In this document: in pieces, positions 1-64,000 of the stretch | How positions within the stretch are numbered: position 1 is the stretch's first letter | Layout of the letters: each line of letters starts with the position of its first letter | NCBI GenBank assembly: GCA_040285825.1 | Contig: JAUPSS010000004.1 | Span: 5,671,784-5,735,783 of the forward strand | Direction of reading: 5' to 3' | Source of the DNA: Eukaryota sp. TZLM1-RC | Lineage: Eukaryota > Protista > Metamonada: BaSk clade | DNA length: 64,000 bases | Position numbers and translations under genes: made by a program | The notes under the pieces: generated by a model | Told to the model about the DNA's origin: nothing | Seen by the model: the letters and a program-made list of their open reading frames with translations, nothing else | Database searches by the model: none

Positions 1-246
1 GAATACAAACTTCTGTCTGGAATTTCTTGAATGGATATGGGGAAACATGATTGCCATAAGTCGGGAGATAAACTGGATATTTCTTCTCTTAAGTTATCCA
101 GGAATAGGCTACTTGTATTTTCAAGAAGATTTTCGGCAAAAGGATATCTTCTAGAGAATTCAAATACAAAATTTTTTCCACCACCAATAAATGCAGCTTT
201 GGTCAAATATTTTGATGAATTGAATCCAACACCGCCAAGTTGAACA
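1..246 (-). mobile_element. Family B internal fragment (post-RT region)
   Basis: Reverse complement of B sequence as at 7555-7797 and 61930-62175. Confidence 0.85.
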
Positions 247-619
247 CACATATCTTGTAAAAGTATGTTAAAAAAAAGTAAAAGATTTGCAAAAGCGGGA
301 TTCTTTTTCTTGGCCAAGCCAAGTCTAACATCAAAATCCAAGCTTTCAAAAATCTTTGACAATTTTTGTTGAAGTTTTTTACAGCAAAACTGTAAATTAA
401 ATAGAGATCGGTTTGGAATTTCTTGAATTGATTGAGGAAAACATTTGGTCCAAATTTGTGGCGGTAATTTTTCAAGTTCACAAGATAACTCATACAAATT
501 TTTTTTTAAAAAAAAATAGGGACATACAAATAGGGACTACAATTGGGGACTAACAGATGAGAATCATCAGGAAATCTACGAGAAAATTCATAAATAAAAT
601 TTTTGCCACCACCCAAGAA
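245..619 (-). mobile_element. Family A internal fragment carrying two tail-only micro-insertions
   Basis: Matches 33600-33920. Extra sequence at 264-277 (TSD gtaaaag) and 500-522 (TSD catacaaat). Confidence 0.8.
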
Positions 620-635
620 AAAATTGTACTAAAAA

Positions 636-2843: not shown

Positions 2844-2847
2844 CAAA

Positions 2848-3968
2848 ATCAAAAGTAATTCCAGATGGACCTGGAGCTTTTCCAGATGGAAGACGGAAAA
2901 TGGCAGTTTCAACTTCTTTTTCAGAAAGTTTTTTTTTAAAAAAATTTAATTTTATTCTAAACCTATAAATCAACATCTAAAAAATCCATCTCTCCCAAAA
3001 CAAAAACACTAGATGCAACTCTCTCATAGTGAGATCCAAGAGAAAGCAAAGCATCAGAAACCATCTTCAACATCCCCTTAAAAATAGAAAACACAATTCT
3101 ATTTTGCCAAAACAATCTGTTGAAATTTCTGCCAGTTCTTCTCTTTACAATCATTTCAAAATCATCCAAAAAACGTAAAGCAGTTGGTGCAAGTGAGCCA
3201 AAAAGGGAAAATACAAATGGATACAAATTGTATTTTTGCATGCTGTAGACTGGCCAATTTGGACAAAGGTTCATTATATTTTTTTGAATTTAAAATTTTC
3301 AGCATTTGAAAGGGGATTATGAATTTCAGAATTAACAAGCCTTTCATTTGAGGCATTACAAGGATCAACAGACATTACATCCAATAAAAAATTAATAAAA
3401 TTAATAAAAAATTTTCAGAAAGTGGATTTTGTTTCCAAAATTGTGAAGCAGATGGTTTATCCAAATTAAGAAATTCAGCTGGATGCAGATCCACTAATTG
3501 ATTTACAGTTTCATCAGTCACAGGAGCAAGATCAGATGAGAACAGAGCGTTTTTCCCTGAACCATATCTCCCACGTAGCAAAAGTTTTCGTACAGTCTTA
3601 TTCTTGGGTTGTTTCTTTGGAGTGAAAACCTTTTGGGGACGAGAACCTGATTTTTGTTCAAGGAAGAATTTCCAAATAGAAAATATATCCCATTCTCCTT
3701 TTTTCAAAGCAAGACTGAATGTTCTAAACGCAACAGAAAAGGGAATTGAAGCCTTGGGACTAAGAACATTCGGAATCTTACATGGAGGCCGTAGTGTATC
3801 AAGTGAGGAGCAAACATGGCATACATATAAATTATTTTTTAAAATATATCTTTCAGCTTTTTCATTACAAATAGCACAATTATCAATTTGACCTGCTTCA
3901 CTACAAATGTCTAACATCACTGCATCATTGTCTTCTGCAGTGCACTCATGTTTGGGAGGTAAATTAAA
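2848..3968 (-). mobile_element. Family B N-terminal fragment (C4 finger) with a nested 5'-truncated A (2930-3411, -)
   Basis: ORF 3375-3920 has CAIC-x15-CHVC. The A insert is flanked by TSD ttttcagaaagt at 2918-2929 and 3412-3423. Duplicated at 10666-11147. Confidence 0.88.
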
Positions 3969-3973
3969 TTAAA

Positions 3974-4145
3974 TCTATTTTTAAGGGAATGGTAACACTA
4001 ATTTCTGATTCACTATCTTCTTTTGGGAAATTTTATGAATCTTTAGCGATTAATTGTTTTGATGTAGGGGAGGCAGGTTTTGAGGATGTGGAGTTTTAAT
4101 TGTGTATTTCATATTTGTTGTTGAATAAAAATAAATCAAAAAAAA
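3974..4145 (+). mobile_element. Family D 3' end (also about 11710-11880)
   Basis: Matches 21457-21620, ends EDVEF*, A-tail. Confidence 0.85.
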
Positions 4146-4155
4146 GAAGAAATTG

Positions 4156-4780
4156 ATTATATGCCATGTGCAAAAGTTTCAATATAGAGGCATTTATTGA
4201 GCCACTAGTACGTAAGCTGTCTTCAGATCAAACAGATGATTCCTTTGGTAAAAGAAGGGCAGATTTAGTAGCTCCAGGGATCGATGGTGTTCTCAATGTT
4301 GTAGACGTTGTCTCAGTGGATGTTTGCAAAAATTCTGCTGCTCGTTTATTGTATTCCGCTGACTCGCCGTTATCTAACGCCGAAAAAAAGAAGATAAAAA
4401 AATATGAATAACCTTTGGCACAGTTAGGTAGAGTGGAACATGTGAAATATCAGTTTGTGCCGTTTGCAATTTCTCTTTTTGGCAATATTGGACCTTCAGG
4501 CTTGCACTTTTTGGAAAATTTTAAAAAAGTGTTACTGAATAGGTCTGGTAAAACAATGAACTCCACTTTCTGGTTAAATAGAATTGTTTTTTGCATTTTC
4601 AAGTCTATTCCAACAATGATTTCAAAGGCACTTTTAGCTATTGGTGTAGAATATGAACGTAATGCTGTGAGTAGGTTCAGTAATAGTGACGCTTGTTTGG
4701 AGGATATTGAATTCTAGATGGGTTTTTTATCTCAATAATTATTCCAGTTTTAAAAATAAAAATTATTCCAGTAAAAAAAA
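4156..4780 (+). mobile_element. Family E 3' end, RLE domain (also about 11892-12514)
   Basis: ORFs 4166-4717 end EDIEF*; reverse complement of 22694-23318. Confidence 0.88.
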
Positions 4781-5327
4781 TGTAGAAGCTTTGTCTTTGA
4801 CACGATCGAAGACAATTGATGCTAGCAAACGAGAAAGAGATTCACCAACAGCAATTGGGCGTATTCCATCAGGTTTGATTCCGTTTCCAGGCTTTACTAA
4901 AGCAATCAGACGTGCTGCGAGTAATTCAAATGGAGGATTAATTTTCAAAACAATCAATTGTTGAAAATAGTGGGCTAGATCATCAGCAATTTCGGGAGCA
5001 CTGGAACACGCTATTTTTAACAGATCAAAAGAAATTCCAGATGGGCCTGCTGCTTTCCCCTTTGGCAATTTTTGAATAGCTTTATGAACTTCAATTGCAG
5101 TAATAGGATTTTCAATCCAAAAAGGACACACTTCAGGCTTGCTGCACTTGAAATTTTCTTGAGGATGCAACTTTTGAAGTTTTTCAAGGGTATCAGAGTT
5201 TGCATCAGCCAAAGAAGAGGAAAACAAAGACTGCTTTGCGGCACCATAACGACCACGTAAGCACAATTTACGGCAAATTTTTGATTTTACAATTTTTCTA
5301 TTTCCAAATTTTTTCTTAAAACAATTT
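4781..5327 (-). mobile_element. Family A fragment, start of RT (also about 12515-13061)
   Basis: ORF 4763-5266 is nearly identical to 22208-22711. Confidence 0.88.
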
Positions 5328-5328
5328 C

Positions 5329-5632
5329 TGGAAAAAAATCAGACTTAATTTTTGACTCCTTTACCCTTGAATCTTCTTCTGGTGTGAAACAAGGTGATCC
5401 TCTTGGCCCTTTGCTGTTTTGTTTGGCTATTCATAATATTATTAAAATGACACAACAAGATTTCCCTGATTTGCGTATTGTTGCCTATATGGATGACATT
5501 TCTACTATTGGTTCTTTTGAAAGCATTTCTAGGGTTTCTGAAGACATTGCGGCGAAATACAAAGAAATTGGTTTAGCTTTGAACCCATCTAAATGTCTCT
5601 TGATTGGTAAAGAAAAACAATCTTTGATGATT
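5329..5632 (+). mobile_element. Family D RT core fragment (also about 13063-13366)
   Basis: QGDPLGP...YMDD, matches 19759-20060. Confidence 0.85.
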
Positions 5633-6781
5633 TTTTTTAAGTACTTTTAATTTATTTTCAAAACCACAGTCTAAAAGTCAATATCTTCAAAACAAGCTTC
5701 CACACCATCAAACCTTACAGCAGCAATGTTTTCATAATGTGCACTGACAGATATTAAAGCTTTCGAAATCATTTTAGGAATTGATTTGAAAATAGTAAAA
5801 ACAATACGATTTAGCCACAAGCGACGATCAAAACGCTTATTCATTCTTTTTTTCACAAGATTTTCAAAATCATCAATAAAATTCAAAGCAGTTTTTCCAA
5901 GACGACCATACAACGATATAGCAAATGGGCAAATTTGGTAATCTACATGGCGAACATGTTTCAATTCTTTTAAAGGATTTGCATACTTTTTCCGTTTGTA
6001 CAATTCGGAGTCATCAAGGGGGGATACTTCGGATTGAGCATTTTTCAAGGCATTTTTCTTGCAAACATCCACTGTTACGACATCAACAACATTCATGACA
6101 TCATCAAACGAGGGCACAACAACATCAGCACGTCGTTTTCCATATTCTGAATCTCTTACACTTTCATTTATATCAAGAGACCTCAACAAAGGTTCTACAA
6201 AAGATTCAATATGATAGGAATTACACATTGCATGGATTTGATCTCTGACTGCATCATGCAACGTAGAACGATAGGAAATATATCTATTACAATTAAATAA
6301 ATGTGATAATGTCAAACCAGCTCCACATTTACAAAACAAATCATTGGGCAAATTACAAGGCCATAAATAACAACGCATTCTCATAGCAGTGGTCCATTGG
6401 TCGTCATTCAAAATAGACCATAAATCTGGGGAATTTGATTTATCAAAACTGCAGATGAACTGTCCTTCAAATCAATCAAAAAATTGGCAAAAGCAGGATT
6501 TTCTTTCTTAGCCGTGCTAAGTCAACAATAAAATCCTTGTTTTCAAAATTTTTCAAAAGATGTCGTTGGAGCTTTTTCAACGCAAATTTTAATGAATATA
6601 AACTTCTGTCTGGAATTTCTTGAATGGATATGGGGAAACATGATTGCCATAAGTCGGGAGATAAACTGGATATTTCTTCTCTTAAGTTATCCAGGAATAT
6701 GCTATTTGTATTTTCAAGAAGATTTTCGGCAAAAGGATATCTTCTAGAGAATTCAAATACAAAATTTTTTCCACCACCAAT
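5633..6781 (-). mobile_element. 5'-truncated family B copy (also about 13367-14514)
   Basis: ORFs 5671-6411 and 6476-6787; T-tail at 5633. Confidence 0.88.
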
Positions 6782-7798
6782 TGTCACGAAAATAGTTGCA
6801 TTTTTAATCTTGATTTCAAAAATGCTTTCAATTCAGTGAAAAGAGATTCAATTTGGAAAGAAATCAAATCAAATTTTCCTGAACTCGAAACCTTTTTTTA
6901 TAGGTTTTATGGTAATTCATCTGATTTAATTTTTTAATTCTTTTTAATCTGGATTCTTTATCAGGAGTTAAACAAGGAGACCCTTTAGGTCCTTTCTTTT
7001 TTTGTCTTGCAATTCACCCAATTTTGAAAAAATTAAAAGAAGAAAATTCTGACCTTCAAGTGGTAGCTTACATGGATGACATTTCTTGTATTGGTCCAGA
7101 AAGTACAATTAATAGGGTTGCTAATGAAGCTGCTACATTATACCAATCCATAGGTCTTGATTTGAATGTTCAAAAATGTTTTTGTATTTCTAGAAAAAAT
7201 GTTAAGTTAATAATTAATTCCCTCGAAGTTCCATATATTGATTATACTTCAACTAGTTTCTGCTTTCTGGGTTGCTATTTAGGTTCCGCCGAAAAAACAC
7301 TTGATAGCCTTGAAAATTATTTAAATTCAATTAAAAAAGAGCTGGAAGTCATAAAGACTCTTGAATTGGAAAAACATCTTAAGTTTTTTCTTTTGAAAAT
7401 TTGTTATGCTGGAAAAATTACTCATTTACTGAGATCATTACCTCCATCCCTAACTTACAATTTTTGTAGACAATTTAACAAAATACGTACCCAATTTTTG
7501 GCTTATTTAATGGCTGTTGATCCATCAATTTTGAAAAATCATATTGTTTCTGATGTTCAACTTGGCGGTGTTGGATTCAATTCATCAAAATATTTGACCA
7601 AAGCTGCATTTATTGGTGGTGGAAAAAATTTTGTATTTGAATTCTCCAGAAGATATCCTTTTGCCGAAAATCTTCTTGAAACTACAAATAGCCTATTCCT
7701 CGATAACTTAAGAGAAGAAATTTCCAGTTTATCTCCAGACTTATGGCAATCATGTTTCCCCATATCTATTCAAGACATTCCAGACAGAAGTTTGTATT
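6778..7798 (+). mobile_element. Family B RT/thumb fragment (also about 14511-15527)
   Basis: N-terminal part of ORF 7024-8313 (YMDD). Confidence 0.88.
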
Positions 7799-7801
7799 GT
7801 A

Positions 7802-8267
7802 TTTTTTTTCCTCCCTCCCTTAGTCAACCCTTTCATATTTCACTTTCTGTCAAAGCGTCAAAGTCGTACTGTTTCTCTGTCAAAACGATGCCTTTGGCTG
7901 ATAGTGACTCTGATACTGATTGGAACGCCCAAGCAAAGATTCTACCAGTCAGATCAAGCTCATCCACTCCACTTCCCCACTCTCCCCACAATACAAGCTA
8001 TGCTCGAAATTCATCTCAAAAAAATTTTCATTCAAAAACTGATCATTGTACCAGAAAAAACACAGAAAAACCACCATTACGTTCCTTGCGTTCTGTTGCG
8101 CGTTCTATTAACAACTCCGTTTCTCGAAATTTGTTTTCTCCAGCTGAAACTGCAAAAAGTCAAAAGTCTATTTCTACTTTTAACTCACAAATTAACAAAA
8201 TTGAAAGAACTGAAAAAATGAAACCACTGCCATTAAAAGGTTCTAAAAAATGTTCGATTTGTGATAT
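7802..8267 (+). mobile_element. Family A 5' end (oligo-T leader, 5' UTR, ATG 7888)
   Basis: Matches 23370-23835. Confidence 0.88.
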
Positions 8268-8282
8268 GATGCTTTCAATTCT

Positions 8283-9623
8283 AAAAATTAATTTATTGAA
8301 TTTGCACACTTGATTAAATTAAATCATAACTAATGGGACGACTATCATTAAACCAAGATTTCCTCTACAAAATCTTGATTTGCTTGCTGTCTAGCTAAAG
8401 CTTCTCTAATTCGATTGAAAAACCGCGGTAATCTATTAATAATGGCAAATTGAATCCGTGAACGCCGAAAAAAATATCAAATCTTTTCATTGTTTTTTCT
8501 TTCACCATTTTTTGGAAGTCATCCAAAAAAGTTTCTGCTTCAACTGATAATCTTCCATTTATCGAAAATGGAAAAGCAATAAAAACCAGCTGTGTATTTC
8601 TATCGATATTTGCATCTTCAATTTCTTTATCATATTTTCTATGTTTTTCTTTTGCTTTAAAATCCAGAGCAGCCACAGGATTAAGTTTTCTTCTGTGAAC
8701 CAAAGTATCGTTTGCAACATTACATGAGACAAAGTCAACAATAGCTTCAGAATTATCAATCCAATCACAGTATACATCACCTCTATCATCAGAACCAAAA
8801 TTATTCAGAGAAAGTGTTTCTTTCAGCAGGGGCTCTTTGATACACGATATCCTTGCAGTTTGTGCCATATTGAAAACAGTGTCTCTAACAGCATCATGTA
8901 ATGAAGAACGATAAGTTATCAATTTAGAGCAATTTAGAGCATGGCGCAAAGTGAGTTGAGGTGAATTCGAACAAATACATTTTTCTTTTGATAATAATTG
9001 GTTAATGGGGATGTTCAAATATAATCTCATTTTTGTTACAAATGCTTCATTAGTAGCACACAATCCAAATCTTCGTGGTACAATGGTTACAAAAAGTGAA
9101 GAATCTGACACCTTGTTTTCACAAACACCCTTTTCCAATAACAATGAATGAAGATCTTGATTTAAAACAGCCGAGCTGCAAATATTATTATAAAGATCTT
9201 TTTCATACATTCCAGTCAATCTTTTCTGTAATGTTCGAAGAGTGTACTTCAAATTTAAAACATTTTTTTCTGGAATATTGCCATTGAATGATTGGGGAAA
9301 ACATCGACCCCATTTTTCTACATCAATTCTTGAAATTTCTTCATTTAATGCAAAAACAGTGGAACTTTGCGTTGTCATCAATAAATCTTCCCAATCTGCA
9401 AATCTTTCGGAGAACTCAAAGATTGCATTTCTGCATCCACCAACAAAAGCACACGAGGTAAGAATAGAAGCCTTCGTCCACCCTAAACCACCATATTGTG
9501 GACTAAGGTAAGCATGATCTGGAATTTGAAACATTTTACATCCCAGTAATTGAGACAGAACTTTTGCACGTAACTCATTAAACTTTTGAGCCAAAGGTCT
9601 AGTGACGAGAGGATTTGTAGATC
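8283..9623 (-). mobile_element. Family C 3' portion
   Basis: Reverse complement of 50849-52185. Confidence 0.9.
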
Positions 9624-10032
9624 TCAGTAAATGTGTAATTTTTCCAGCATAACAAATTTTCAAAAGAAAAAACTTAAGATGTTTTTCCAATTCAAGAGTC
9701 TTTATGACTTCTAGCTCTTTTTTAATTGAATTTAAATAATTTTCAAGGCTATCAAGTGTTTTTTCGGCGGAACCTAAATAGCAACCAAGAAAGCAGAAAC
9801 TAGTTGAAGTATAATCAATATATGGAACTTCAAGGGAATTAATTATTAACTTAACATTTTTCCTAGAAATACAAAAACATTTTTGAACATTCAACTCAAG
9901 ACCTATGGATTGGTATAATGTAGCAGCTTCATTAGCAACCCTATTAATTGTACTTTCTGGACCAGTACAAGAAATGTCATCCATGTAAGCTACCACTTGA
10001 AGGTCAGAATTTTCTTCTTTTAATTTTTTCAA
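8395..10032 (-). CDS. In-frame chimeric ORF: family B RT fused to the family C C-terminal half (CCHC-RLE)
   Basis: B sequence up to GKITHLLRS, then C sequence from TNPLVTRP; shared gatc at 9620-9623. Confidence 0.8.
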   Translation of the reverse strand: MKKLKEENSDLQVVAYMDDISCTGPESTINRVANEAATLYQSIGLELNVQKCFCISRKNVKLIINSLEVPYIDYTSTSFCFLGCYLGSAEKTLDSLENYLNSIKKELEVIKTLELEKHLKFFLLKICYAGKITHLLRSTNPLVTRPLAQKFNELRAKVLSQLLGCKMFQIPDHAYLSPQYGGLGWTKASILTSCAFVGGCRNAIFEFSERFADWEDLLMTTQSSTVFALNEEISRIDVEKWGRCFPQSFNGNIPEKNVLNLKYTLRTLQKRLTGMYEKDLYNNICSSAVLNQDLHSLLLEKGVCENKVSDSSLFVTIVPRRFGLCATNEAFVTKMRLYLNIPINQLLSKEKCICSNSPQLTLRHALNCSKLITYRSSLHDAVRDTVFNMAQTARISCIKEPLLKETLSLNNFGSDDRGDVYCDWIDNSEAIVDFVSCNVANDTLVHRRKLNPVAALDFKAKEKHRKYDKEIEDANIDRNTQLVFIAFPFSINGRLSVEAETFLDDFQKMVKEKTMKRFDIFFGVHGFNLPLLIDYRGFSIELEKL

Positions 10033-11704
10033 AATTGGGTGAATTGCAAGACAAAAAAAGAAAGGACCTAAAGGGTCTCCTTGTTTAACTCCTGATAAAG
10101 AATCCAGATTAAAAGAATTAAAAATTAAATCAGATGAATTACCATAAAACCTATAAAAAAAGGTTTCGAGTTCAGGAAAATTTGATTTGATTTCTTTCCA
10201 AATTGAATCTCTCTTTTCACTGAATTGAAAGCATTTTTGAAATCAAGATTAAAAATGCAACTATTTTCGTGACAATTGAAAAACAAATCAGATGTCAAAG
10301 CTGCAACTGAAGCTCCATCTATGGTTTTGATTCCATATTGGAATGGAGAAAAGTATTCTTTAGCTTTTGTTGAAACTCGATTAAAAATTACTGAAGACAT
10401 CAGGCGATAAATGGCTTCACCTATAGCAATTGGGCGAACTTTTCCATTAGGTTTAGTTAAAGCCACTAACCGTGATGCACTTAATTCTTTGGGTGGAACA
10501 ATTTTCATTGTCAAAACATCTTGAAAAAAGGAACATAAATCTTTAATAATAAAGGAATTTTGGCGGCACACAGATTTCAGCATATCAAAAGTAATTCCAG
10601 ATGGACCTGGAGCTTTTCCAGATGGAAGACGGAAAATGGCAGTTTCAACTTCTTTTTCAGAAAGTTTTTTTTTTAAAAAAAATTTAATTTTATTCTAAAC
10701 CTATAAATCAACATCTAAAAAATCCATCTCTCCCAAAACAAAAACACTAGATGCAACTCTCTCATAGTGAGATCCAAGAGAAAGCAAAGCATCAGAAACC
10801 ATCTTCAACATCCCCTTAAAAATAGAAAACACAATTCTATTTTGCCAAAACAATCTGTTGAAATTTCTGCCAGTTCTTCTCTTTACAATCATTTCAAAAT
10901 CATCCAAAAAACGTAAAGCAGTTGGTGCAAGTGAGCCAAAAAGGGAAAATACAAATGGATACAAATTGTATTTTGCATGCTGTAGACTGGCCAATTTGGA
11001 CAAAGGTTCATTATATTTTTTGAATTTAAAATTTTCAGCATTTGAAAGGGGATTATGAATTTCAGAATTAACAAGCCTTTCATTTGAGGCATTACAAGGA
11101 TCAACAGACATTACATCCAATAAAAAATTAATAAAATTAATAAAAAATTTTCAGAAAGTGGATTTTGTTTCCAAAATTGTGAAGCAGATGGTTTATCCAA
11201 ATTAAGAAATTCAGCTGGATGCAGATCCACTAATTGATTTACAGTTTCATCAGTCACAGGAGCAAGATCAGATGAGAACAGAGCGTTTTTCCCTGAACCA
11301 TATCTCCCACGTAGCAAAAGTTTTCGTACAGTCTTATTCTTGGGTTGTTTCTTTGGAGTGAAAACCTTTTGGGGACGAGAACCTGATTTTTGTTCAAGGA
11401 AGAATTTCCAAATAGAAAATATATCCCATTCTCCTTTTTTCAAAGCAAGACTGAATGTTCTAAACGCAACAGAAAAGGGAATGGAAGCCTTGGGACTAAG
11501 AACATTCGGAATCTTACATGGAGGCCGTAGTGTATCAAGTGAGGAGCAAACATGGCATACATATAAATTATTTTTTAAAATATATCTTTCAGCTTTTTCA
11601 TTACAAATAGCACAATTATCAATTTGACTTGCTTCAAGGGGAATATCTAACATCACTGCATCATTGTCTTCTGCAGTGCACTCATGTTTGGGAGGTAAAT
11701 TAAA
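9620..11704 (-). mobile_element. Family B fragment (N-terminal to RT) with nested A (10666-11147)
   Basis: ORFs 10125-10583 and 11111-11656; TSD at 10654-10665 and 11148-11159. Confidence 0.88.
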
Positions 11705-21582: not shown

Positions 21583-21669
21583 TTGTGTATTTCATATTTG
21601 TTGTTGAATAAAAATAAATTAAGGAAAAAAAAAATTGTGATATCAGTGGTCATAATTCGAGAACGTGCC

Positions 21670-21737
21670 ATTAATGATAGTCGTCCCATTAGTTATGATT
21701 TAATTTAATCAAATGTGCAAATTCAATAAATATAAAT
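21670..21737 (+). mobile_element. Family C 3'-UTR-only insertion in A
   Basis: TSD agaacgtgcc at 21660-21669 and 21738-21747; matches 52122-52185. Confidence 0.9.
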
Positions 21738-47651: not shown

Positions 47652-47839
47652 CTGCATCCAGCTGAATTTCTTAATTTGGATAATCCATCTGCTTCACAAT
47701 TTTGGAAACAAAATCCACTTTCTGAAAAAGAAGTTGAAACTGCCATTTTTCGTCTTCCATCTGGAAAAGCTCCAGGTCCATCTGGAATAACTTTTGATAT
47801 GCTGAAATCTGTGTGCCGCCAAAATTCCTTTATTATTAA

Positions 47840-47918
47840 TTTTTTTTTTAATTTAATTTTAATTTATTTTCAAAACCACAGTCTAAAAGTCAATATCTTC
47901 AAAACAAGCTTCCACACT
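47840..47918 (-). mobile_element. Mini family B 3' end inserted in B
   Basis: TSD tttattattaa at 47829-47839 and 47919-47929. Confidence 0.88.
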
Positions 47919-48849
47919 TTTATTATTAAAGATTTATGTTCCTTTTTTCAAGATGTTTTGACAATGAAAATTGTTCCACCCAAAGAATTAAGTGCATCAC
48001 GGTTAGTGGCTTTAACTAAACCTAATGGAAAAGTTCGCCCAATTGCTATAGGTGAAGCCATTTATCGCCTGATGTCTTCAGTAATTTTTAACCGAGTTTC
48101 AACAAAAGCTAAAGAATACTTTTCTCCATTCCAATATGGAATCAAAACCATAGATGGAGCTTCAGTTGCGGCTTTGACATCTGATCTTTTTTTCAATTGT
48201 CACGAAAATAGTTGCATTTTTAATCTTGATTTCAAAAATGCTTTCAATTCAGTGAAAAGAGATTCAATTTGGAAAGAAATCAAATCAAATTTTCCTGAAC
48301 TCGAAACCTTTTTTTATAGGTTTTATGGTAATTCATCTGATTTAATTTTTAATTCTTTTAATCTTGATTCTTTATCAGGAGTTAAACAAGGAGACCCTTT
48401 AGGTCCTTTCTTTTTTTGTCTTGCAATTCACCCAATTTTGAAAAAATTAAAAGAAGAAAATTCTGACCTTCAAGTGGTAGCCTACATGGATGACATTTCT
48501 TGTATTGGTCCAGAAAGTACAATTAATAGGGTTGCTAATGAAGCTGCTACATTATACCAATCCATAGGTCTTGAGTTGAATGTTCAAAAATGTTTTTGTA
48601 TTTCTAGGAAAAATGTAAAGTTAATAATTAATTCCCTTGAAGTTCCATATATTGATTATACTTCAACTAGTTTCTGCTTTCTTGGTTGCTATTTAGGTTC
48701 CGCCGAAAAAACACTTGATAGCCTTGAAAATTATTTAAATTCAATTAAAAAAGAGCTAGAAGTCATAAAGACTCTTGAATTGGAAAAACATCTTAAGTTT
48801 TTTCTTTTGAAAATTTGTTATGCTGGAAAAATTACTCATTTACTGCGAT

Positions 48850-51800: not shown

Positions 51801-52186
51801 TGCTCTGGATTTTAAAGCAAAAGAAAAACATAGAAAATATGATAAAGAAATTGAAGATGCAAATATCGATAGAAATACACAGCTGGTTTTTATTGCTTTT
51901 CCATTTTCGATAAATGGAAGATTATCAGTTGAAGCAGAAACTTTTTTGGATGACTTCCAAAAAATGGTGAAAGAAAAAACAATGAAAAGATTTGATATTT
52001 TTTTATGGCGTTCACGGATTCAATTTGCCATTATTAATAGATTACCGCGGTTTTTCAATCGAATTAGAGAAGCTTTAGCTAGACAGCCAGCAAATCAAGA
52101 TTTTGTAGAGGAAATCTTGGTTTAATGATAGTCGTCCCATTAGTTATGATTTAATTTAATCAAGTGTGCAAATTCAATAAATTAAT
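48850..52186 (+). mobile_element. Full-length, uninterrupted family C element inserted in B
   Basis: Oligo-T 5' end, 3' UTR with AATAAA, TSD atttactgcgat at 48838-48849 and 52187-52198. Confidence 0.94.
48930..52125 (+). CDS. Family C polyprotein (about 1065 aa: Zn knuckle, C4 finger, RT, CCHC, RLE) with homopolymer frameshifts
   Basis: ORFs 48924, 49166, 49378-50988 (YMDD) and 51019-52125 (CIC..HALNC, RGD, KEKHRKY). Confidence 0.82.
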
Positions 52187-53525
52187 ATTTACTGCGATCA
52201 TTACCTCCATCCCTAACTTACAATTTTTGTAGACAATTTAACAAAATACGTACCCAATTTTTGGCTTATTTAATGTCTGTTGATCCATCAATTTTGAAAA
52301 ATCATATTTTTTCTGATGTTCAACTTGGTGGTGTTGGATTCAATTCATCAAAATATTTGACCAAAGCTGCATTTATTGGTGGTGGAAAAAATTTTGTATT
52401 TGAATTCTCTAGAAGATATCCTTTGCCGAAAATCTTCTTGAAACTACAAATAGCCTATTCCTCGATAACTTAAGAGAAGAAATTTCCAGTTTATCTCCCG
52501 ACTTATGGCAATCATGTTTCCCCATATCCATTCAAGAAATTCCAGACAGAAGTTTGTATTCATTAAAATTTGCGTTGAAAAAGCTCCAACGACATCTTTT
52601 GAAAATATTTGAAAGCAAGGATTTTATTGTTCGACTTAGCACGGCTAAGAAAGAAAATCCTGCTTTTGCCAATTTTTTGATTGATTTGAAGGACAGTTCA
52701 TCTGCAGTTTTGATAAATCAAATTCCCCAGATTTATGGTCTATTTTTGAATGACGACCAATGGACCACTGCTATGAGAATGCGTTGTTATTTATGGCCTT
52801 GTAATTTGCCCAATGATTTGTTTTGCAAATGTGGAGCTGGTTTGACATTATCACATTTATTTAATTGTAATAGATATATTTCCTATCGTTCTACGTTGCA
52901 TGATGCAGTCAGAGATCAAATCCATGCAATGTGTAATTCCTATCATATTGAATCTTTTGTAGAACCTTTGTTGAGGTCTCTTGATATAAATGAAAGCGTA
53001 AGAGATTCAGAATATGGAAAACGACGTGCTGATGTTGTTGTGCCCTCGTTTGATGATGTCATGAATGTTGTTGATGTCGTAACAGTGGATGTATGCAAGA
53101 AAAATGCCTTGAAAAATGCTCAATCCGAAGTATCCCCCTTGATGACTCCGAATTGTACAAACGGAAAAAGTATGCAAATCCTTTAAAAGAATTGAAGCAT
53201 GTTCGCCATGTAGATTACCAAATTTGCCCATTTGCTATATCGTTGTATGGTCGTCTTGGAAAAACTGCTTTGAATTTTATTGATGATTTTGAAAATCTTG
53301 TGAAAAAAAGAATGAATAAGCGTTTTTATCGTCGCTTGTGGCTAAATCGTATTGTTTTTACTATTTTCAAATCAATTCCTAAAATGATTTCGAAAGCTTT
53401 AATGTCTGTCAGTTCACATTATGAAAACATTGCTGCTGTAAGGTTTGATGGTGTGGAAGCTTGTTTTGAAGATATTGACTTTTAGACTGTGGTTTTGAAA
53501 ATAAATTAAAAGTATGTTAAAAAAA

Positions 53526-56500
53526 TGCAGCTTTGACATCTGATCTGTTTTTCAATTGTCACGAAAATAGTTGCATTTTTAATCTTGATTTCAAAAATGC
53601 TTTCAATTCAGTGAAAAGAGATTCAATTTGGAAAGAAATCAAATCAAATTTTCCTGAACTCGAAACCTTTTTTTATAGGTTTTATGGTAATTCATCTGAT
53701 TTAATTTTTAATTCTTTTAATCTGGATTCTTTATCAGGAGTTAAACAAGGAGACCCTTTAGGTCCTTTCTTTTTTTGTCTTGCAATTCACCCAATTTTGA
53801 AAAAAATTAAAAGAAGAAAATTCTGACCTTCAAGTGGTAGCTTACATGGATGACATTTCTTGTATTGGTCCAGAAAGTACAATTAATAGGGTTGCTAATG
53901 AAGCTGCTACATTATACCAATCCATAGGTCTTGATTTGAATGTTCAAAAATGTTTTTGTATTTCTAGAAACAATGTTAAGTTAATAATTAATTCCCTCGA
54001 AGTTCCATATATTGATTATACTTCAACTAGTTTCTGCTTTCTGGGTTGCTATTTAGGTTCCGCCGAAAAGACACTTGACAGCCTTGAAAATTATTTAAAT
54101 TCAATTAAAAAAGAGCTAGAAGTCATAAAGACTCTTGAATTGGAAAAACATCTTAAGTTTTCTCTTTTGAAAATTTGTTATGCTGGAAAAATTACTCATT
54201 TACTGCGATTTTTTTTTCTTCCTCTACATATAACCGTTTAACTTAAAACCTGGCTGAACCGAGATCATTGCTTCTGTTCTTTTTTGTTGATGTCTGAATC
54301 AGTTTCTGATTCTAATGGAGTCAAAAGAAAGAACGATAGTCAACAAGATGCTCAAGACGTCCTTTCCACCTCTCCTCCTCAACCTCTTCTCTCTTCATTT
54401 TTGGACAAAAAAAATTCTGATCAAGAATTTTTAGACAATCACGATGAAAAAAAAGTTTGTTCAAAAACAAAGCCACGCTCCTACAGATGCTCAAAGTGTC
54501 GACAACAGGGACATAATGCTCGAACATGCCCCAATGTTGGAAAAAATGATGCGGCAAATTCTGAAACAAAATGTAAAAGAAAATTTATTAGAAGGAAAGA
54601 GTCTAAGGTAGAACCCATAAATAATGCTCCACAAGTTGTTGCAAAACCAGTTAGCAATCGATTGAAGCACAAAACTTGCAACACTTGTGGTATTTCTTTT
54701 AGAAAAAATGCAAAGGAAAAACTTCTGATCGCTGCTTGAAATGCCGCATAGTTGATAACTACCATCCTCCCATAAGAATACCTCAAGAAATTCATCCGAC
54801 CAAATGCAATGAATTTGCTTTCGTTTTTCAAAGATTTTTGGATCAATTATGTAAAGGAAAGTATGCTATCAATATTATTTGGGAATTTTTTGGTTCTTTT
54901 TGTCCTCCTTTTGAACAAAATTTCGTTAATATTTCCGAAGATTTAACCAATATAGCACCGAGAAATCAGTCATCCGAGAAATTAAGTAAAATTTTTGAAG
55001 ACAAATGCTTTGACAACAAATGGTCCAAGGCTTTGTCAGCTTTAAGTCCCGGAGTCAAAGCACCGAACAATGAAAATACAGTAGATAAACTGAAAATACT
55101 TCATCCTTATGAAGACCCTGTTATGGATCAAAATTTTTACGGCACATACTGGGAAAATTATCCATTGATGCCATCAGAAGTTTTTTCGGTTATCAAAAAG
55201 AGACCTCGTGGTAAGTCTGCCGGACTTTCTGGTATTACTATTGATCATGTAAAAGCCGCGATTATTTCTTCAGAAGATTGCCTTGGTTTATTGACCAAAT
55301 TTTTCAACCAAATATTATCTGGTCAACGCAAGTACCCAGAAGAATTAAGAAGTTCTCGTTTGACTGCACTTGTCAAAAATTCAAAAATGGATGTTCGTCC
55401 TATTGCAGTCTCTGAGAGCTTACATAATATTTTTTTCTGCGTGTTGCTTAAGCAGGTTCAATGAAAAAGCTAAAAAGATTTTATTACCCTTTCAATATGG
55501 TATAAATACTACAGATGGAGTCTCTTCAGCGATTTTTGCTACTGATGTCTTATTTCGTCAAAATGAATCCAATGTTTGCATGTCATTGGATTTTAGTAAT
55601 GCTTTCAATTCGCTAAGTCGTCGCAGTATCCATGGTGCTCTATTGCAATATATGCCAGAATTAATACCATATTTTCAATCAACATATTGCACATATTCTA
55701 ATTTACATTTTGGTAACAACATTTTGATTTCATCAAGTGGCGTAAAGCAAGGAGATCCGTTAGGACCTCTTTTGTTTTGTTTGGCGATTCATCCTATTCT
55801 ACTGCAAATTCAAGAGATGTTTCCTTCACTAAAAATGATTGCATATATGGATGATGTTGTGCTTATTGGTGAATTAAATATTGTGAAAAAAGCAACTGTA
55901 TGTTTTAAAGAATTATTTACCAAAATTGGTCTCCGACTTAATTTACTTAAATGTGTTTTGTTATCGAATTCTCCAGTTTCCACAATAATTGATGATATTG
56001 AAATTCAAGCCAAATTATATTCAATTGATGCTATTCGTCATTTGGGTTCGTTTTTAGGAAATAATGATGAAATTACCAAAAAATTGTTTGAAAAGTTGAA
56101 CTCAATTTCTGACAAAATTGACCGAATGATGAATTTAGATATAAAAAAACACATCAAATTTACCATTATAAGACTGTGTTTTAGTTCCAATTTTAATCAT
56201 ATATTTCGATCTACAAATCCTCTCGTCACTAGACCTTTGGCTCAAAAGTTTAATGAGTTACGTGCAAAAGTTCTGTCTCAATTACTGGGATGTAAAATGT
56301 TTCAAATTCCAGATCATGCTTACCTTAGTCCACAATATGGTGGTTTAGGGTGGACGAAGGCTTCTATTCTTACCTCGTGTGCTTTTGTTGGTGGATGCAG
56401 AAATGCAATCTTTGAGTTCTCCGAAAGATTTGCAGATTGGGAAGATTTATTGATGACAACGCAAAGTTCCACTGTTTTTGCATTAAATGAAGAAATTTCA

Positions 56501-59500
56501 AGAATTGATGTAGAAAAATGGGGTCGATGTTTTCCCCAATCATTCAATGGCAATATTCCAGAAAAAATGTTTTAAATTTGAAGTACACTCTTCGAACATT
56601 ACAGAAAAGATTGACTGGAATGTATGAAAAAGATCTTTATAATAATATTTGCAGCTCGGCTGTTTTAAATCAAGATCTTCACTCATTGTTATTGGAAAAG
56701 GGTGTTTGTGAAAACAAGGTGTCAGATTCTTCACTTTTTGTAACCATTGTACCACGAAGATTTGGATTGTGTGCTACTAATGAAGCATTTGTAACAAAAA
56801 TGAGATTATATTTGAACATCCCCATTAACCAATTATTATCAAAAGAAAAATGTATTTGTTCGAATTCACCTCAACTCACTTTGCGCCATGCTCTAAATTG
56901 CTCTAAATTGATAACTTATCGTTCTTCATTACATGATGCTGTTAGAGACACTGTTTTCAATATGGCACAAACTGCAAGGATATCGTGTATCAAAGAGCCC
57001 CTGCTGAAAGAAACACTTTCTCTGAATAATTTTGGTTCTGATGATAGAGGTGATGTATACTGTGATTGGATTGATAATTCTGAAGCTATTGTTGACTTTG
57101 TCTCATGTAATGTTGCAAACGATACTTTGGTTCACAGAAGAAAACTTAATCCTGTGGCTGCTCTGGATTTTAAAGCAAAAGAAAAACATAGAAAATATTT
57201 TTTTTTTAAAATTTAATTTTATTCTAAACCTATAAATCAACATCTAAAAAATCCATCTCTCCCAAAACAAAAACACTAGATGCAACTCTCTCATAGTGAG
57301 ATCCAAGAGAAAGCAAAGCATCAGAAACCATCTTCAACATCCCCTTAAAAATAGAAAACACAATTCTATTTTGCCAAAACAATCTGTTGAAATTTCTGCC
57401 AGTTCTTCTCTTTACAATCATTTCAAAATCATCCAAAAAACGTAAAGCAGTTGGTGCAAGTGAACCAAAAAGGGAAAATACAAATGGATACAAATTGTAT
57501 TTTGCATGCTGTAGACTGGCCAATTTGGACAAAGGTTCATTGTATTTTTTGAATTTAAAATTTTCAGCATTTGAAAGGGGATTATGAATTTCAGAATTAA
57601 CAAGCCTTTCATTTGAGGCATTACAAGGATCAACAGACATTACATCCAATAAAATGAAGCTTCCATCTAATCCAGGTAATATGACATCACCTCTATTATT
57701 CTTATGAAAATCATTTTCAGCATCAAACAGATTTGACAACAAAGGTTCCAAGAAGGATTCAATTCTATGAGATTTACACATACAATATAACTGGTCTCTT
57801 ACAGCATCATGAACCTTGCTTCTAAAAGTAATAAAATGTTTACAATTTAACAAATGAGTAGTTGTAATTTCTCGAGAACATTTACAAATTAAATTATGAG
57901 GTAAATTATCAGGCCAGATAAAGGAACGAAATCTCATATTCAGAGTCCAAGCAGAATCGGATAAGAGAGTACCATAAACTTGTGGAATTGTTGTTACTAA
58001 GGCAGAAGAAGTACTGTCACACATATCTTGTAAAAGATTTGCAAAAGCGGGATTCTTTTTCTTGGCCAAGCCAAGTCTAACATCAAAATCCAAGCTTTAA
58101 ACATAGAAAATATGATAAAGAAATTGAAGATGCAAATATCGATAGAAATACACAGCTGGTTTTTATTGCTTTTCCATTTTCGATAAATGGAAGATTATCA
58201 GTTGAAGCAGAAACTTTTTTGGATGACTTCCAAAAAATGGTGAAAGAAAAAACAATGAAAAGATTTGATATTTTTTTATGGCGTTCACGGATTCAATTTG
58301 CCATTATTAATAGATTACCGCGGTTTTTCAATCGAATTAGAGAAGCTTTAGCTAGACAGCAAGCAAATCAAGATTTTGTAGAGGAAATCTTGGTTTAATG
58401 ATAGTCGTCCCATTAGTTATGATTTAATTTAATCAAGTGTGCAAATTCAATAAATTAATATTTACTGCGATCATTACCTCCATCCCTAACTTACAATTTT
58501 TGTAGACAATTTAACAAAATACGTACCCAATTTTTGGCTTATTTAATGTCTGTTGATCCATCAATTTTGAAAAATCATATTTTTTCTGATGTTCAACTTG
58601 GTGGTGTTGGATTCAATTCATCAAAATATTTGACCAAAGCTGCATTTATTGGTGGTGGAAAAAATTTTGTATTTGAATTCTCTAGAAGATATCCTTTTGC
58701 CGAAAATCTTCTTGAAACTACAAATAGCCTATTCCTCGATAACTTAAGAGAAGAAATTTCCAGTTTATCTCCCGACTTATGGCAATCATGTTTCCCCATA
58801 TCCATTCAAGAAATTCCAGACAGAAGTTTGTATTCATTAAAATTTGCGTTGAAAAAGCTCCAACGACATCTTTTTGAAAATATTTGAAAGCAAGGATTTT
58901 ATTGTTCGACTTAGCACGGCTAAGAAAGAAAATCCTGCTTTTGCCAATTTTTGATTGATTTGAAGGACAGTTCATCTGCAGTTTTGATAAATCAAATTCC
59001 CCAGATTTATTTTTTTTTTTAAAAAAAAATTAATTTTATTCTAAACCTATAAATCAACATCTAAAAAATCCATCTCTCCCAAAACAAAAACACTAGATGC
59101 AACTCTCTCATAGTGAGATCCAAGAGAAAGCAAAGCATCAGAAACCATCATCAACATCCCCTTAAAAATAGAAAACACAATTCTATTTTGCCAAAACAAT
59201 CTGTTGAAATTTCTGCCAGTTCTTCTCTTTACAATCATTTCAAAATCATCCAAAAAACGTAAAGCAGTTGGTGCAAGTGAACCAAAAGGGAAAATACAAA
59301 TGGATACAAATTGTATTTTGCATGCTGTAGACTGGCCAATTTGGACAAAGGTTCATTGTATTTTTTGAATTTAAAATTTTCAGCATTTGAAAGGGGATTA
59401 TGAATTTCAGAATTAACAAGCCTTTCATTTGAGGCATTACAAGGATCAACAGACATTACATCCAATAAAATAAAGCTTCCATCTAATCCAGGTAATATGA

Positions 59501-61129
59501 CATCACCTCTATTATTCTTATGAAAATCATTTTCAGCATCAAACAGATTTGACAACAGAGGTTCCAAGAAGGATTCAATTCTATGAGATTTACACATACA
59601 ATATAACTGGTCTCTTACAGCATCATGAACCTTGCTTCTAAAAAGTAATAAAATGTTTACAATTTAACAAATGAGTAGTTGTAATTTCTCGAGAACATTT
59701 ACAAATTAAATTATGAGGTAAATTATCAGGCCAGATAAAGGAACGAAATCTCATATTCAGAGTCCAAGCAGAATCGGATAAGAGAGTACCATATACTTGC
59801 GGAATTGTTGTTACTAAGGCAGAAGAAGTACTGTCACACATATCTTGTAAAAAGATTTGCAAAAGCGGGATTCTTTTTCTTGGCCAAGCCAAGTCTAACA
59901 TCAAAATCCAAGCTTTCAAAAATCTTTGACAATTTTTGTTGAAGCTTTTTACAGCAAAACTGTAAATTAAATAGAGATCGGTTTGGAATTTCTTGAATTG
60001 ATTGAGGAAAGCATTTGGTCCAAATTTGTGGCGGTAATTTTTCAAGTTCACAAGATAACTTATACAAATAGGGACTACAATTGGGGACTAACAGATGGGA
60101 ATCATCAGGAAATCTACGAGAAAATTCATAAATAAAATTTTTGCCACCACCCAAGAATGCTGATTGACACAAAATTGAAGATTTAGTAAATCCAATACCC
60201 CCCAAATTTGCTGAAGAAAATAAATGGCTTTTCAACATTCCTGGTTCTACATCCAATAAATCAGCAAAAATTCTGTTCTCAATGAATTAAAAGAACGACA
60301 AAAATCTAATGCTATGGAATCTAATGCCCCAGATTTATGGTCTATTTTTGAATGACGACCAATGGACCACTGCTATGAGAATGCGTTGTTATTTATGGCC
60401 TTGTAATTTGCCCAATGATTTGTTTTGCAAATGTGGAGCTGGTTTGACATTATCACATTTATTTAATTGTAATAGATATATTTCCTATCGTTCTACGTTG
60501 CATGATGCAGTCAGAGATCAAATCCATGCAATGTGTAATTCCTATCATATTGAATCTTTTGTAGAACCTTTGTTGAGGTCTCTTGATATAAATGAAAGCG
60601 TAAGAGATTCAGAATATGGAAAACGACGTGCTGATGTTGTTGTGCCCTCGTTTGATGATGTCATGAATGTTGTTGATGTCGTAACAGTGGATGTATGCAA
60701 GAAAAATGCCTTGAAAAATGCTCAATCCGAAGTATCCCCCCTTGATGACTCCGAATTGTACAAACGGAAAAAGTATGCAAATCCTTTAAAAGAATTGAAG
60801 CATGTTCGCCATGTAGATTACCAAATTTGCCCATTTGCTATATCGTTGTATGGTCGTCTTGGAAAAACTGCTTTGAATTTTATTGATGATTTTGAAAATC
60901 TTGTGAAAAAAAGAATGAATAAGCGTTTTTATCGTCGCTTGTGGCTAAATCGTATTGTTTTTACTATTTTCAAATCAATTCCTAAAATGATTTCGAAAGC
61001 TTTAATGTCTGTCAGTTCACATTATGAAAACATTGCTGCTGTAAGGTTTGATGGTGTGGAAGCTTGTTTTGAAGATATTGACTTTTTAGACTGTGGTTTT
61101 GAAAATAAATTAAAAGTATGTTAAAAAAA
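53526..61129 (+). mobile_element. Head-to-tail 5'-truncated B unit 2 with nested C (54210-58459) and A (59011-60326)
   Basis: C TSD atttactgcgat at 54198-54209 and 58460-58471. A TSD ccccagatttat at 58999-59010 and 60327-60338. Confidence 0.9.
54210..58459 (+). mobile_element. Full-length family C (duplicate of 48850-52186) with nested A(-) at 57199-58098
   Basis: A TSD aaacatagaaaatat at 57184-57198 and 58099-58113. Confidence 0.92.
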
Positions 61130-64000
61130 TGCAGCTTTGACATCTGATCTGTTTTTCAATTGTCACGAAAATAGTTGCATTTTTAATCTTGATTTCAAAA
61201 ATGCTTTCAATTCAGTGAAAAGAGATTCAATTTGGAAAGAAATCAAATCAAATTTTCCTGAACTCGAAACCTTTTTTTATAGGTTTTATGGTAATTCATC
61301 TGATTTAATTTTTAATTCTTTTAATCTGGATTCTTTATCAGGAGTTAAACAAGGAGACCCTTTAGGTCCTTTCTTTTTTTGTCTTGCAATTCACCCAATT
61401 TTGAAAAAATTAAAAGAAGAAAATTCTGACCTTCAAGTGGTAGCTTACATGGATGACATTTCTTGTATTGGTCCAGAAAGTACAATTAATAGGGTTGCTA
61501 ATGAAGCTGCTACATTATACCCAATCCATAGGTCTTGATTTGAATGTTCAAAAATGTTTTTGTATTTCTAGAAAAAATGTTAAGTTAATAATTAATTCCC
61601 TCGAAGTTCCATATATTGATTATACTTCAACTAGTTTCTGCTTTCTGGGTTGCTATTTAGGTTCCGCCGAAAAGACACTTGACAGCCTTGAAAATTATTT
61701 AAATTCAATTAAAAAGAGCTAGAAGTCATAAAGACTCTTGAATTGGAAAAACATCTTAAGTTTTCTCTTTTGAAAATTTGTTATGCTGGAAAAATTACTC
61801 ATTTACTGCGATCATTACCTCCATCCCTAACTTACAATTTTTGTAGACAATTTAACAAAATACGTACCCAATTTTTGGCTTATTTAATGTCTGTTGATCC
61901 ATCAATTTTGAAAAATCATATTTTTTCTGATGTTCAACTTGGTGGTGTTGGATTCAATTCATCAAAATATTTGACCAAAGCTGCATTTATTGGTGGTGGA
62001 AAAAATTTTGTATTTGAATTCTCTAGAAGATATCCTTTTGCCGAAAATCTTCTTGAAACTACAAATAGCCTATTCCTCGATAACTTAAGAGAAGAAATTT
62101 CCAGTTTATCTCCCGACTTATGGCAATCATGTTTCCCCATATCCATTCAAGAAATTCCAGACAGAAGTTTGTATTCATTAAAATTTGCGTTGAAAAAGCT
62201 CCAACGACATCTTTTGAAAATATTTGAAAGCAAGGATTTTATTGTTCGACTTAGCACGGCTAAGAAAGAAAATCCTGCTTTTGCCAATTTTTTGATTGAT
62301 TTGAAGGACAGTTCATCTGCAGTTTTGATAAATCAAATTCCCCAGATTTATTTTTTTTTTTAAAAAAAATTAATTTTATTCTAAACCTATAAATCAACAT
62401 CTAAAAAATCCATCTCTCCCAAAACAAAAACACTAGATGCAACTCTCTCATAGTGAGATCCAAGAGAAAGCAAAGCATCAGAAACCATCATCAACATCCC
62501 CTTAAAAATAGAAAACACAATTCTATTTTGCCAAAACAATCTGTTGAAATTTCTGCCAGTTCTTCTCTTTACAATCATTTCAAAATCATCCAAAAAACGT
62601 AAAGCAGTTGGTGCAAGTGAACCAAAAAGGGAAAATACAAATGGATACAAATTGTATTTTGCATGCTGTAGACTGGCCAATTTGCACATTATGAAAACAT
62701 TGCTGCTGTAAGGTTTGATGGTGTGGAAGCTTGTTTTGAAGATATTGACTTTTAGACTGTGGTTTTGAAAATAAATTAAAATTAAATTAAAAAAAAAATT
62801 TGGACAAAGGTTCATTGTATTTTTTGAATTTAAAATTTTCAGCATTTGAAAGGGGATTATGAATTTCAGAATTAACAAGCCTTTCATTTGAGGCATTACA
62901 AGGATCAACAGACATTACATCCAATAAAATAAAGCTTCCATCTAATCCAGGTAATATGACATCACCTCTATTATTCTTATGAAAATCATTTTCAGCATCA
63001 AACAGATTTGACAACAGAGGTTCCAAGAAGGATTCAATTCTATGAGATTTACACATACAATATAACTGGTCTCTTACAGCATCATGAACCTTGCTTCTAA
63101 AAGTAATAAAATGTTTACAATTTAACAAATGAGTAGTTGTAATTTCTCGAGAACATTTACAAATTAAATTATGAGGTAAATTATCAGGCCAGATAAAGGA
63201 ACGAAATCTCATATTCAGAGTCCAAGCAGAATCGGATAAGAGAGTACCATATACTTGCGGAATTGTTGTTACTAAGGCAGAAGAAGTACTGTCACACATA
63301 TCTTGTAAAAGATTTGCAAAAGCGGGATTCTTTTTCTTGGCCAAGCCAAGTCTAACATCAAAATCCAAGCTTTCAAAAATCTTTGACAATTTTTGTTGAA
63401 GCTTTTTACAGCAAAACTGTAAATTAAATAGAGATCGGTTTGGAATTTCTTGAATTGATTGAGGAAAGCATTTGGTCCAAATTTGTGGCGGTAATTTTTC
63501 AAGTTCACAAGATAACTTATACAAATAGGGACTACAATTGGGGACTAACAGATGGGAATCATCAGGAAATCTACGAGAAAATTCATAAATAAAATTTTTG
63601 CCACCACCCAAGAATGCTGATTGACACAAAATTGAAGATTTAGTAAATCCAATACCCCCCAAATTTGCTGAAGAAAATAAATGGCTTTTCAACATTCCTG
63701 GTTCTACATCCAATAAATCAGCAAAAAATTCTGTTCTCAATGAATTAAAAGAACGACAAAAATCTAATGCTATGGAATCTAATGCCCCAGATTTATGGTC
63801 TATTTTTGAATGACGACCAATGGACCACTGCTATGAGAATGCGTTGTTATTTATGGCCTTGTAATTTGCCCAATGATTTGTTTTGCAAATGTGGAGCTGG
63901 TTTGACATTATCACATTTATTTAATTGTAATAGATATATTTCCTATCGTTCTACGTTGCATGATGCAGTCAGAGATCAAATCCATGCAATGTGTAATTCC
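61130..64000 (+). mobile_element. Head-to-tail B unit 3 (no C insertion) with nested A(-) at 62352-63784, itself carrying a mini-B (62685-62796)
   Basis: Same start junction as 53526. Single atttactgcgat at 61801. A TSD at 62340-62351 and 63785-63796. Mini-B TSD aatttg. Confidence 0.88.

Follow-up and report, generated by a model that had tools for sequence, protein, structure and literature searches.

The stretch of DNA considered here, a window of 64 kb from Skoliomonas litria TZLM1-RC (Eukaryota sp. TZLM1-RC; assembly GCA_040285825.1, JAUPSS010000004.1:5,671,784-5,735,783), consists almost entirely of copies of five families, A to E, of long interspersed nuclear element (LINE)-like retrotransposons that are predicted to carry a restriction-like endonuclease (RLE). 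The window is probably the middle of an island of more than 100 kb, in which elements of low target specificity have piled into one another. The most plausible reading of this island is that transposons have piled up in it; that it serves as a centromere is no more than a possibility. The contig, which measures 6,907,603 bp, is the largest of the assembly. The genome has been reported as 31.9 Mb in 16 contigs, with 35.8% G+C and 55.4% repeats, on the basis of 41x Nanopore data (PMC11316075); transposons and centromeres were left unanalysed in that paper.

As references for the five families, real copies from the window were stitched across insertions, with no consensus being built; they measure 2.9 kb for A, 3.3 kb for both B and C, 3.5 kb for D and at least 1.95 kb for E. 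At an identity of at least 85%, these references account for 63,492 of the 64,000 bases (99.2%), in 76 fragments located on both strands. D makes up 34.5% of the window, A 30.6%, B 18.9%, C 8.5% and E 6.7%. With a protein profile of the second open reading frame (ORF2) of RLE-type LINEs, built from full-length relatives, 82.8% of the window is matched; what the matches leave over, in stretches of at most 950 bp, corresponds to the non-coding 5' and 3' ends of elements. Neither the references nor the profile leave a host gene in the window, and its 64 kb are free of tRNA and Rfam RNA genes and of satellite arrays, a two-copy repeat of 40 bp, itself duplicated, being all that was found of the latter kind. 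The G+C content is 33% throughout. At least one further copy within the window exists for 96.4% of the bases, and the copies are 97-99.8% identical over most of the aligned length. Coding matches are found on the plus strand (28.6 kb) as well as on the minus strand (25.9 kb), and the reverse transcriptases (RTs) of the five families are 35-55% identical to each other in protein. A preliminary description of the window had spoken of five families, of near-identical copies in both orientations and of the absence of host DNA, all of which is borne out by these figures.

The same families continue on either side. Followed in two steps outward, the left flank of 18.9 kb is covered by them for 99.6% and 100%, and the right flank of 19.4 kb for 98% and 78%. 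The length given below is a lower bound, both edges lying beyond the region sampled.

Window 1..64000, record JAUPSS010000004.1:5,652,884-5,755,185 or more, no strand assigned: island of RLE-LINE families A to E without genes, at least 102 kb.

A telomeric or subtelomeric location was considered and rejected, as the 102-kb region is devoid of TTAGGG-type repeats and the window lies 1.15 Mb from the end of the contig.

Because of their match with R2 proteins in a profile comparison, the endonuclease columns shared by all five families and the lack of an apurinic/apyrimidinic (AP) endonuclease, the elements are classified, as far as sequence can tell, as RLE-bearing and LINE-like, with an RT, a CCHC knuckle and an endonuclease of the PD-(D/E)xK type. 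Pfam recognizes RVT_1 in the window ORFs (E = 5e-25 to 3e-20), and the closest solved relatives of the RT are R2 proteins, which indicates an RT of the non-LTR type (LTR, long terminal repeat). The alignment of the family profile with solved R2 proteins spans the RT, the CCHC knuckle and the endonuclease (E = 7e-38), positions 130-834 of the profile corresponding to residues 409-1137 of the 1169 residues of R2 chain 9nl3_A. When the C-terminal ORF of family B was searched as a single sequence against solved structures, no match was obtained; the match came with the profile. The C-terminal regions of all five families can be aligned and have kept a C..C..H..C knuckle followed by R..H, E, D and D columns, after which a K..KY motif is seen by eye. 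An AP endonuclease (Exo_endo_phos) was not detected by Pfam, which finds only RVT_1 in the products P0034, P0060 and P0027 of 880-906 amino acids (aa); at least P0034 is a spliced gene model across a frame break. In family B, a CCHC knuckle resembling that of gag is encoded in addition by a short ORF farther upstream. Near the 3' end, all families contain an AATAAA-like motif, followed by a short variable tail that is specific for the family and ends in poly(A) in A, D, E and C, while that of B is without an A-run.

Nesting was established by a strict definition. An insertion was called if an alignment pair is contiguous in one copy and interrupted in another, with an exact target-site duplication (TSD) and an empty site in the window. 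This yields 13 independent nested insertions with TSDs of 8-15 bp (most often 12), or 16 if duplicated composites are included; about 25 clean TSDs had been counted in the preliminary description, of which the order of magnitude stands and the number does not. D entered A five times and B twice, A entered D twice, and the remaining four events are A in A, E in D, B in A and A in C; an insertion of C in D is seen besides. Since A is found in D and D in A, the periods in which these two were active overlapped, and the families would appear, on this sequence evidence, to have been co-active in the sense of overlapping insertion periods, as had been proposed. Ten of the 13 insertions are antisense to the element that received them (one-sided binomial p of about 0.05).

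The target appears to be defined minimally. The base preceding the TSD is a pyrimidine in 12 of the 13 events and the first base of the TSD is an A in 10, and no longer motif emerges beyond pyrimidine|A when the 13 pre-insertion sites are aligned. In the 102-kb region and four other loci together, about 20 distinct 3' flanks are found for D, nine for A and nine for B, with no sequence in common; the 3' flanks of E are diverse as well, and family B occurs in A, in D and in non-element DNA. A fixed target of the kind used by other RLE elements, such as ribosomal DNA (rDNA), spliced-leader RNA or small nuclear RNA (snRNA) genes, is therefore not seen for A, B, D and E, with flanks this diverse and a window free of RNA genes. 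In this respect, the earlier proposal that no sequence is targeted holds good, apart from the preference for pyrimidine|A. The 5'-truncated copies share their 3' ends and have A-rich or poly(A) tails and TSDs, as is characteristic of target-primed reverse transcription. Representative copies of the families are located as follows.

48850..52189, plus strand: full-length B (3.34 kb), upstream CCHC ORF followed by RT, CCHC and RLE, inserted in A with TSD TTACTGCGAT.
23370..26850, plus strand: full-length D (3.48 kb) with a T-run and a poly(A) end, inserted into a C copy.
45286..47651, minus strand: 5'-truncated D (2.37 kb), antisense in A with TSD CTGCATCCAGCT, containing an RT ORF of 366 aa (46557-47657).
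47652..53525, plus strand: A copy with its poly(A) tail at 53525; two sequences interrupt it, a 79-bp A 3' end in inverted orientation (47840-47918) and the full B.
22700..30159, minus strand: C copy in three pieces (28307-30159, 26851-27652 and 22700-23369), split by a 3' fragment of B (27653-28306) and by the full-length D.
19667..21619, plus strand: E copy (1.95 kb) that starts within the RT.
41539-42923: second 3' fragment of E, in D with TSD AATTGATGAGGAT.

A contiguous D copy of 3.45 kb is present in the left flank, and the A copy that ends at 53525 directly abuts another 5'-truncated A. At window position 47650, a 5'-truncated D on the minus strand and a 5'-truncated A on the plus strand stand head to head at homologous positions of the RT. 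The insertion of D in A with TSD CTGCATCCAGCT accounts for part of this junction, and not for the homologous break points.

Transposition is not the only source of repetition. About a third of the repeated junctions are due to tandem or inverted duplication and to recombination between families, and much of the repetition of the window is duplication and not transposition, an aspect that was absent from the preliminary description. The composite blocks have periods of 1.2, 3.3, 5.4 and 7.7 kb and include the following.

2848-9623 and 10584-17363 (span 2848..17363): composite block of 6.8 kb, directly duplicated with a period of 7,736 bp and an identity of 99.25%.
48167-51840 and 53526-57198 (span 48167..57198): direct duplication of a composite block of A and B, 3.7 kb, 99.4% identical.
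58452..64000: tandem copies of a 5'-truncated A carrying a D insertion, period 3,340 bp.
34617-36984: direct duplication, period 1,194 bp.
4156-5330 and 22145-23318: inverted duplication of a composite block.

The junction between A end and A start in the block at 58452..64000 occurs five times in the 102-kb region. The block with the shortest period contains two 3' ends of A in tandem, 40 bp apart, at a single D site (35362-35441), and the same pair is found again at 36556-36635; this arrangement resembles the outcome of two insertions in succession, each with extreme 5' truncation, at the same nick site, the pair being duplicated afterwards together with the 1.19-kb block. Exchange between families seems also to have reached the coding regions, as in this element:

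8395..10032, minus strand: in-frame A/B chimera with an open frame of 545 aa, made up of the RT of family A and the C-terminal part of family B.

The switch in the chimera, located at 9621-9623, joins homologous codons, and 3 nt there are common to both families, which suggests template switching or inter-family recombination as its possible origin. Just to the right of the window, at 5,741,598-5,744,790 of the record, lies a mosaic element annotated as a protein of 1038 aa, which recurs in another sampled stretch. In its 5' and 3' parts it matches A at 97-99% identity, and its RT core is at most 75% identical to anything in the window. Mosaics of this type, with A-like ends and a different RT core, are found both right outside the window and in a second island (see below). 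As far as the sequences go, families may have exchanged modules, or the mosaic element may belong to a sixth family.

The distribution of the families in the remainder of the genome was followed with locus tags as a rough ruler, and the matches listed are a biased sample of B- and D-like ORFs, from which counts are indicative only. At least 319 annotated B- or D-like ORFs are found among them, spread over 15 contigs, where they occupy more than 150 separate places. Dense clusters number about 12 among the matches listed, as tallied by locus tags. When clusters are counted per chromosome, as had been proposed, the outcome is not one each; each large contig carries one to three of them, and contigs may not equal chromosomes. 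A second island built only of RLE elements is present on the same contig, 2.7 Mb away, at 2.946-2.968 Mb, where a sample of 21 kb consists for 99.5% of the window families; by locus-tag span among the matches listed, it is larger than the island of the window.

Copies occur among ordinary genes as well. On the same contig, B copies that are 94.5% identical (at 4.84 Mb) and 90% identical (at 0.31 Mb) lie beside genes, their neighbours including Vps4, an acetyltransferase, a transaldolase, a kinase, OST3 and Brr2. At 3.13 Mb, a near-full-length D copy, 98.07% identical to a window copy and bordered by a TSD of 12 bp, GGTGGAAGTCAC, has a GH20 hydrolase gene at a distance of about 3 kb and an Spb1 methyltransferase gene at about 5 kb. 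This copy is annotated as a protein of 906 aa, the 'intron' of which apparently spans a frame break. On another contig, a full-length B copy of 99.2% identity resides in a nest of about 7 kb. Other classes of transposons are interspersed with genes too, as indicated by an ORF with a hAT dimerisation domain that lies close to a lone B copy among genes.

On the basis of these observations, it is possible to propose how the island came into being. The endonuclease would nick the bottom strand at the minimal pyrimidine|A motif, and the resulting T-ended primer could pair with the poly(A) tail of the element RNA, so that target-primed reverse transcription is started; a second nick, 8-15 bp away, would then generate the TSD. 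With such a low specificity, elements may land anywhere, including beside genes, where copies with TSDs are indeed seen. They would persist and accumulate in places where selection against them is absent, and a gene-free patch, once it exists, would grow. Tandem and inverted duplications of composites, together with recombination between families, may expand the island further without any transposition.

Several points weigh against this explanation. Pure RLE islands look rare; the dozen or so dense clusters among the matches listed are about as many as the large contigs, and such a parity is what a specialised domain would predict, and not what passive accumulation would. The two genic copies examined (90-94.5% identical) are older than the copies in the island, and from this difference in age it could be that recent insertion is biased towards islands, to which the single genic D copy of 98% is opposed. 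Three sets of near-coincident sites (D in A, C and E in D, and A ends in D) hint at a local preference. Finally, selection and retention, on which accumulation would depend, enter the explanation by inference.

It is possible, but rather unlikely, that the island forms a regional centromere, or a part of one, composed of LINE-like elements, which by analogy with Zepp and ZeppL would be tolerated at, or attracted to, chromatin containing CenH3. In favour of this are its size of more than 100 kb without genes or satellites, its exclusive composition of mutually nested retroelements, and the one to three dense clusters per large contig among the matches listed; that dense islands are roughly as numerous as large contigs leaves room for a centromeric role. 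In Coccomyxa and Chlamydomonas, the centromeric repeat consists of self-nesting LINE clusters (PMC8226300), and an association with CENH3 has been reported (bioRxiv 10.1101/2025.03.28.645958). However, a monocentric chromosome allows one such region, and the contig has two RLE-only islands 2.7 Mb apart, of which the other is the larger by locus-tag span. Moreover, unlike ZeppL, the families are present at more than 150 other places among the matches listed, some of these beside genes. A more general form of this idea, in which islands of RLE-type LINEs of more than 100 kb would be the regional centromeres of Skoliomonas, about one of them being functional per chromosome and insertion being biased to chromatin that elements already occupy, is put forward as tentatively.

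The Zepp/ZeppL cluster of green algae (Coccomyxa, Chlorella and Chlamydomonas) would nevertheless seem to be the closest described analogue of the island. In both cases, LINE-like elements insert into themselves and form gene-free nests that are rich in 3' ends as a result of 5' truncation, and the Zepp and ZeppL clusters are candidate or proven centromeric DNA (PMC8226300). They differ in that Zepp and ZeppL belong to the L1 clade and have an AP endonuclease, while the island combines five families of the RLE type. In addition, Zepp/ZeppL is reported to form strictly one cluster per chromosome and to be absent elsewhere, whereas here copies are found among genes and two islands on one contig.

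The mechanism put forward in the preliminary description, by which integration is steered to heterochromatin that the elements themselves induce, so that a domain renews itself independently of sequence, is judged to be quite improbable. Such steering would fit with a target shared only as the pyrimidine|A dinucleotide and, in a small sample, with the finding that most young copies (97-99.8%) are in islands and the two oldest (90-94.5%) among genes. It is at odds with the near-full-length D copy of 98.07%, with its clean TSD of 12 bp at about 3 kb from host genes of an expressed type, and with the B copy of 99.2% in a nest of only about 7 kb. The high identity within the island stems partly from segmental duplication rather than from new insertion; in a region consisting of transposons only, any insertion hits a transposon, and nesting by itself is no evidence of targeting. 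A chromodomain-like tethering domain was not found by Pfam. The self-built and exclusive domain of the earlier proposal does not agree with B and D copies beside genes and with more than 150 places among the matches listed. Young copies beside genes, wide dispersal and two islands on one contig weaken steering and the centromere alike.

Mutual site-specific targeting, in which each family would be specific for a site inside another family as R2 is for rDNA, is very hard to uphold. It is to this idea that the insertion hot spots would lend themselves. Three independent D insertions, all antisense, fall within 35 bp of the 3' half of A and differ in their TSDs, tails and truncation points.

32781..34616, minus strand: D at the hot spot in the 3' half of A, TSD GACCAATGGACCACT, with a nested 109-bp A 3' end (33959-34067).
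36985..37809, minus strand: second independent D at the hot spot, TSD TTCCCCAGATTT, with another 5' truncation point.
59011..60326, minus strand: third independent D at the hot spot, TSD CCCCAGATTTAT, offset by 2 bp from the second; together with its flanks it is duplicated at 62352-63784.

Likewise, the points at which C and E were inserted in D are no more than about 20 bp apart, and 3' ends of A recur at one site in D. In simulations on the real window, however, three insertions share a site in 2% of the trials with 11 events and in 9% with 18, which makes the D hot spot (3 of 11 events, p of about 0.02) marginal and the hot spots suggestive only. Strict site specificity was rejected, being largely refuted by the diversity of the 3' flanks, with no common sequence among those of D, B and A, and by the occurrence of B in A, in D and in non-element DNA.

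There is, finally, only a slight chance that the arrangement is an artefact, arisen from repeats mis-joined or mis-copied in the Nanopore assembly. That assembly is based on 41x data (PMC11316075), tandem composites that are 99.3-99.8% alike are difficult to resolve, and the window B copy differs from the majority variant in the reads by a +1/-1 indel pair. Mis-joins do not produce 13 insertions with exact TSDs and matching empty sites; moreover, the same families nest alike at independent loci on other contigs, and the units, of at most 3.5 kb, are far shorter than a typical Nanopore read. Contigs assembled from the short reads of four 2023 DNA runs were compared with positions 47600-53599 of the window only, a check for which long-range structure is out of reach. 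They contain A copies without B and other flanks at both ends of B, and their depth rises from about 20-60 at the 5' end of B to 400-1200 at its 3' end, which fits 5' truncation genome-wide. The reading frame of the B copy at 48850..52189 is broken between about 50906 and 51023, and a conserved GG.G.T...FLGG segment is read in the wrong frame; in the reads, the majority variant, represented by contigs of high depth, has +1 at 50906 and -1 at 51023, an indel pair that restores the conserved frame. The window copy is either frameshifted or mis-polished, and broken ORFs in the assembly may partly be polishing errors in repeats. One run, which is labelled with another organism and another sample and comes from the same study, contains 56% of the sampled words of the stretch at 95-100% identity; yet in GEM-RC1 and TZLM3-RCL, the sister strains, protein identity of the annotated relatives is only 34-59%. 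Behind this run there could be a difference in labelling, a culture that was mixed, or a strain that is very close.

The island, taken as a pile-up of retrotransposons of low specificity, can be placed among other known systems. Nested transposon islands, such as the intergenic nests of maize and the heterochromatin of Drosophila, similarly have young elements inside older ones, lack genes and have undergone secondary rearrangements. Those nests are made up mostly of LTR elements of many kinds, whereas the present island is built from a single superfamily of RLE-type LINEs, in a protist genome of 32 Mb. The domain order of families A to E, with an RT, then a CCHC knuckle, then a C-terminal RLE, is that of R2, CRE/SLACS, NeSL and Utopia, R2 being the best structural match. 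Site-specific RLE lineages integrate at rDNA, spliced-leader genes, snRNA genes or microsatellites (PMC4640811); in contrast to R2, CRE/SLACS, NeSL and Utopia, there is no such target in the window and the flanks of the families are diverse. GilM and GilT of Giardia, also of the RLE type, are metamonad LINEs that form multi-copy arrays in a gene-poor compartment (PMC7000408; PMC10999387), and are likened to the island by arrangement and not by sequence. They are situated at chromosome ends and oriented to the telomere, unlike the internal island with elements in both orientations and no telomere repeats nearby.

A part of the large repeat fraction of this genome, 55.4%, can thus be attributed to a guild of RLE-type LINEs without a fixed target site, which build islands of more than 100 kb. 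Hundreds of the 'hypothetical proteins' annotated in the S. litria genome are fragments of these elements, which is useful for annotation. The approximately 12 dense clusters among the matches listed provide a short list of candidate centromere loci. If the islands are not centromeric, they would be ordinary transposon graveyards. If, however, one island per chromosome were to be centromeric, this would constitute a case of LINE-built centromeres outside the green algae, independent of these; such islands would provide the first description of centromeres in a free-living metamonad, and the first case of centromeres built from RLE-type LINEs.

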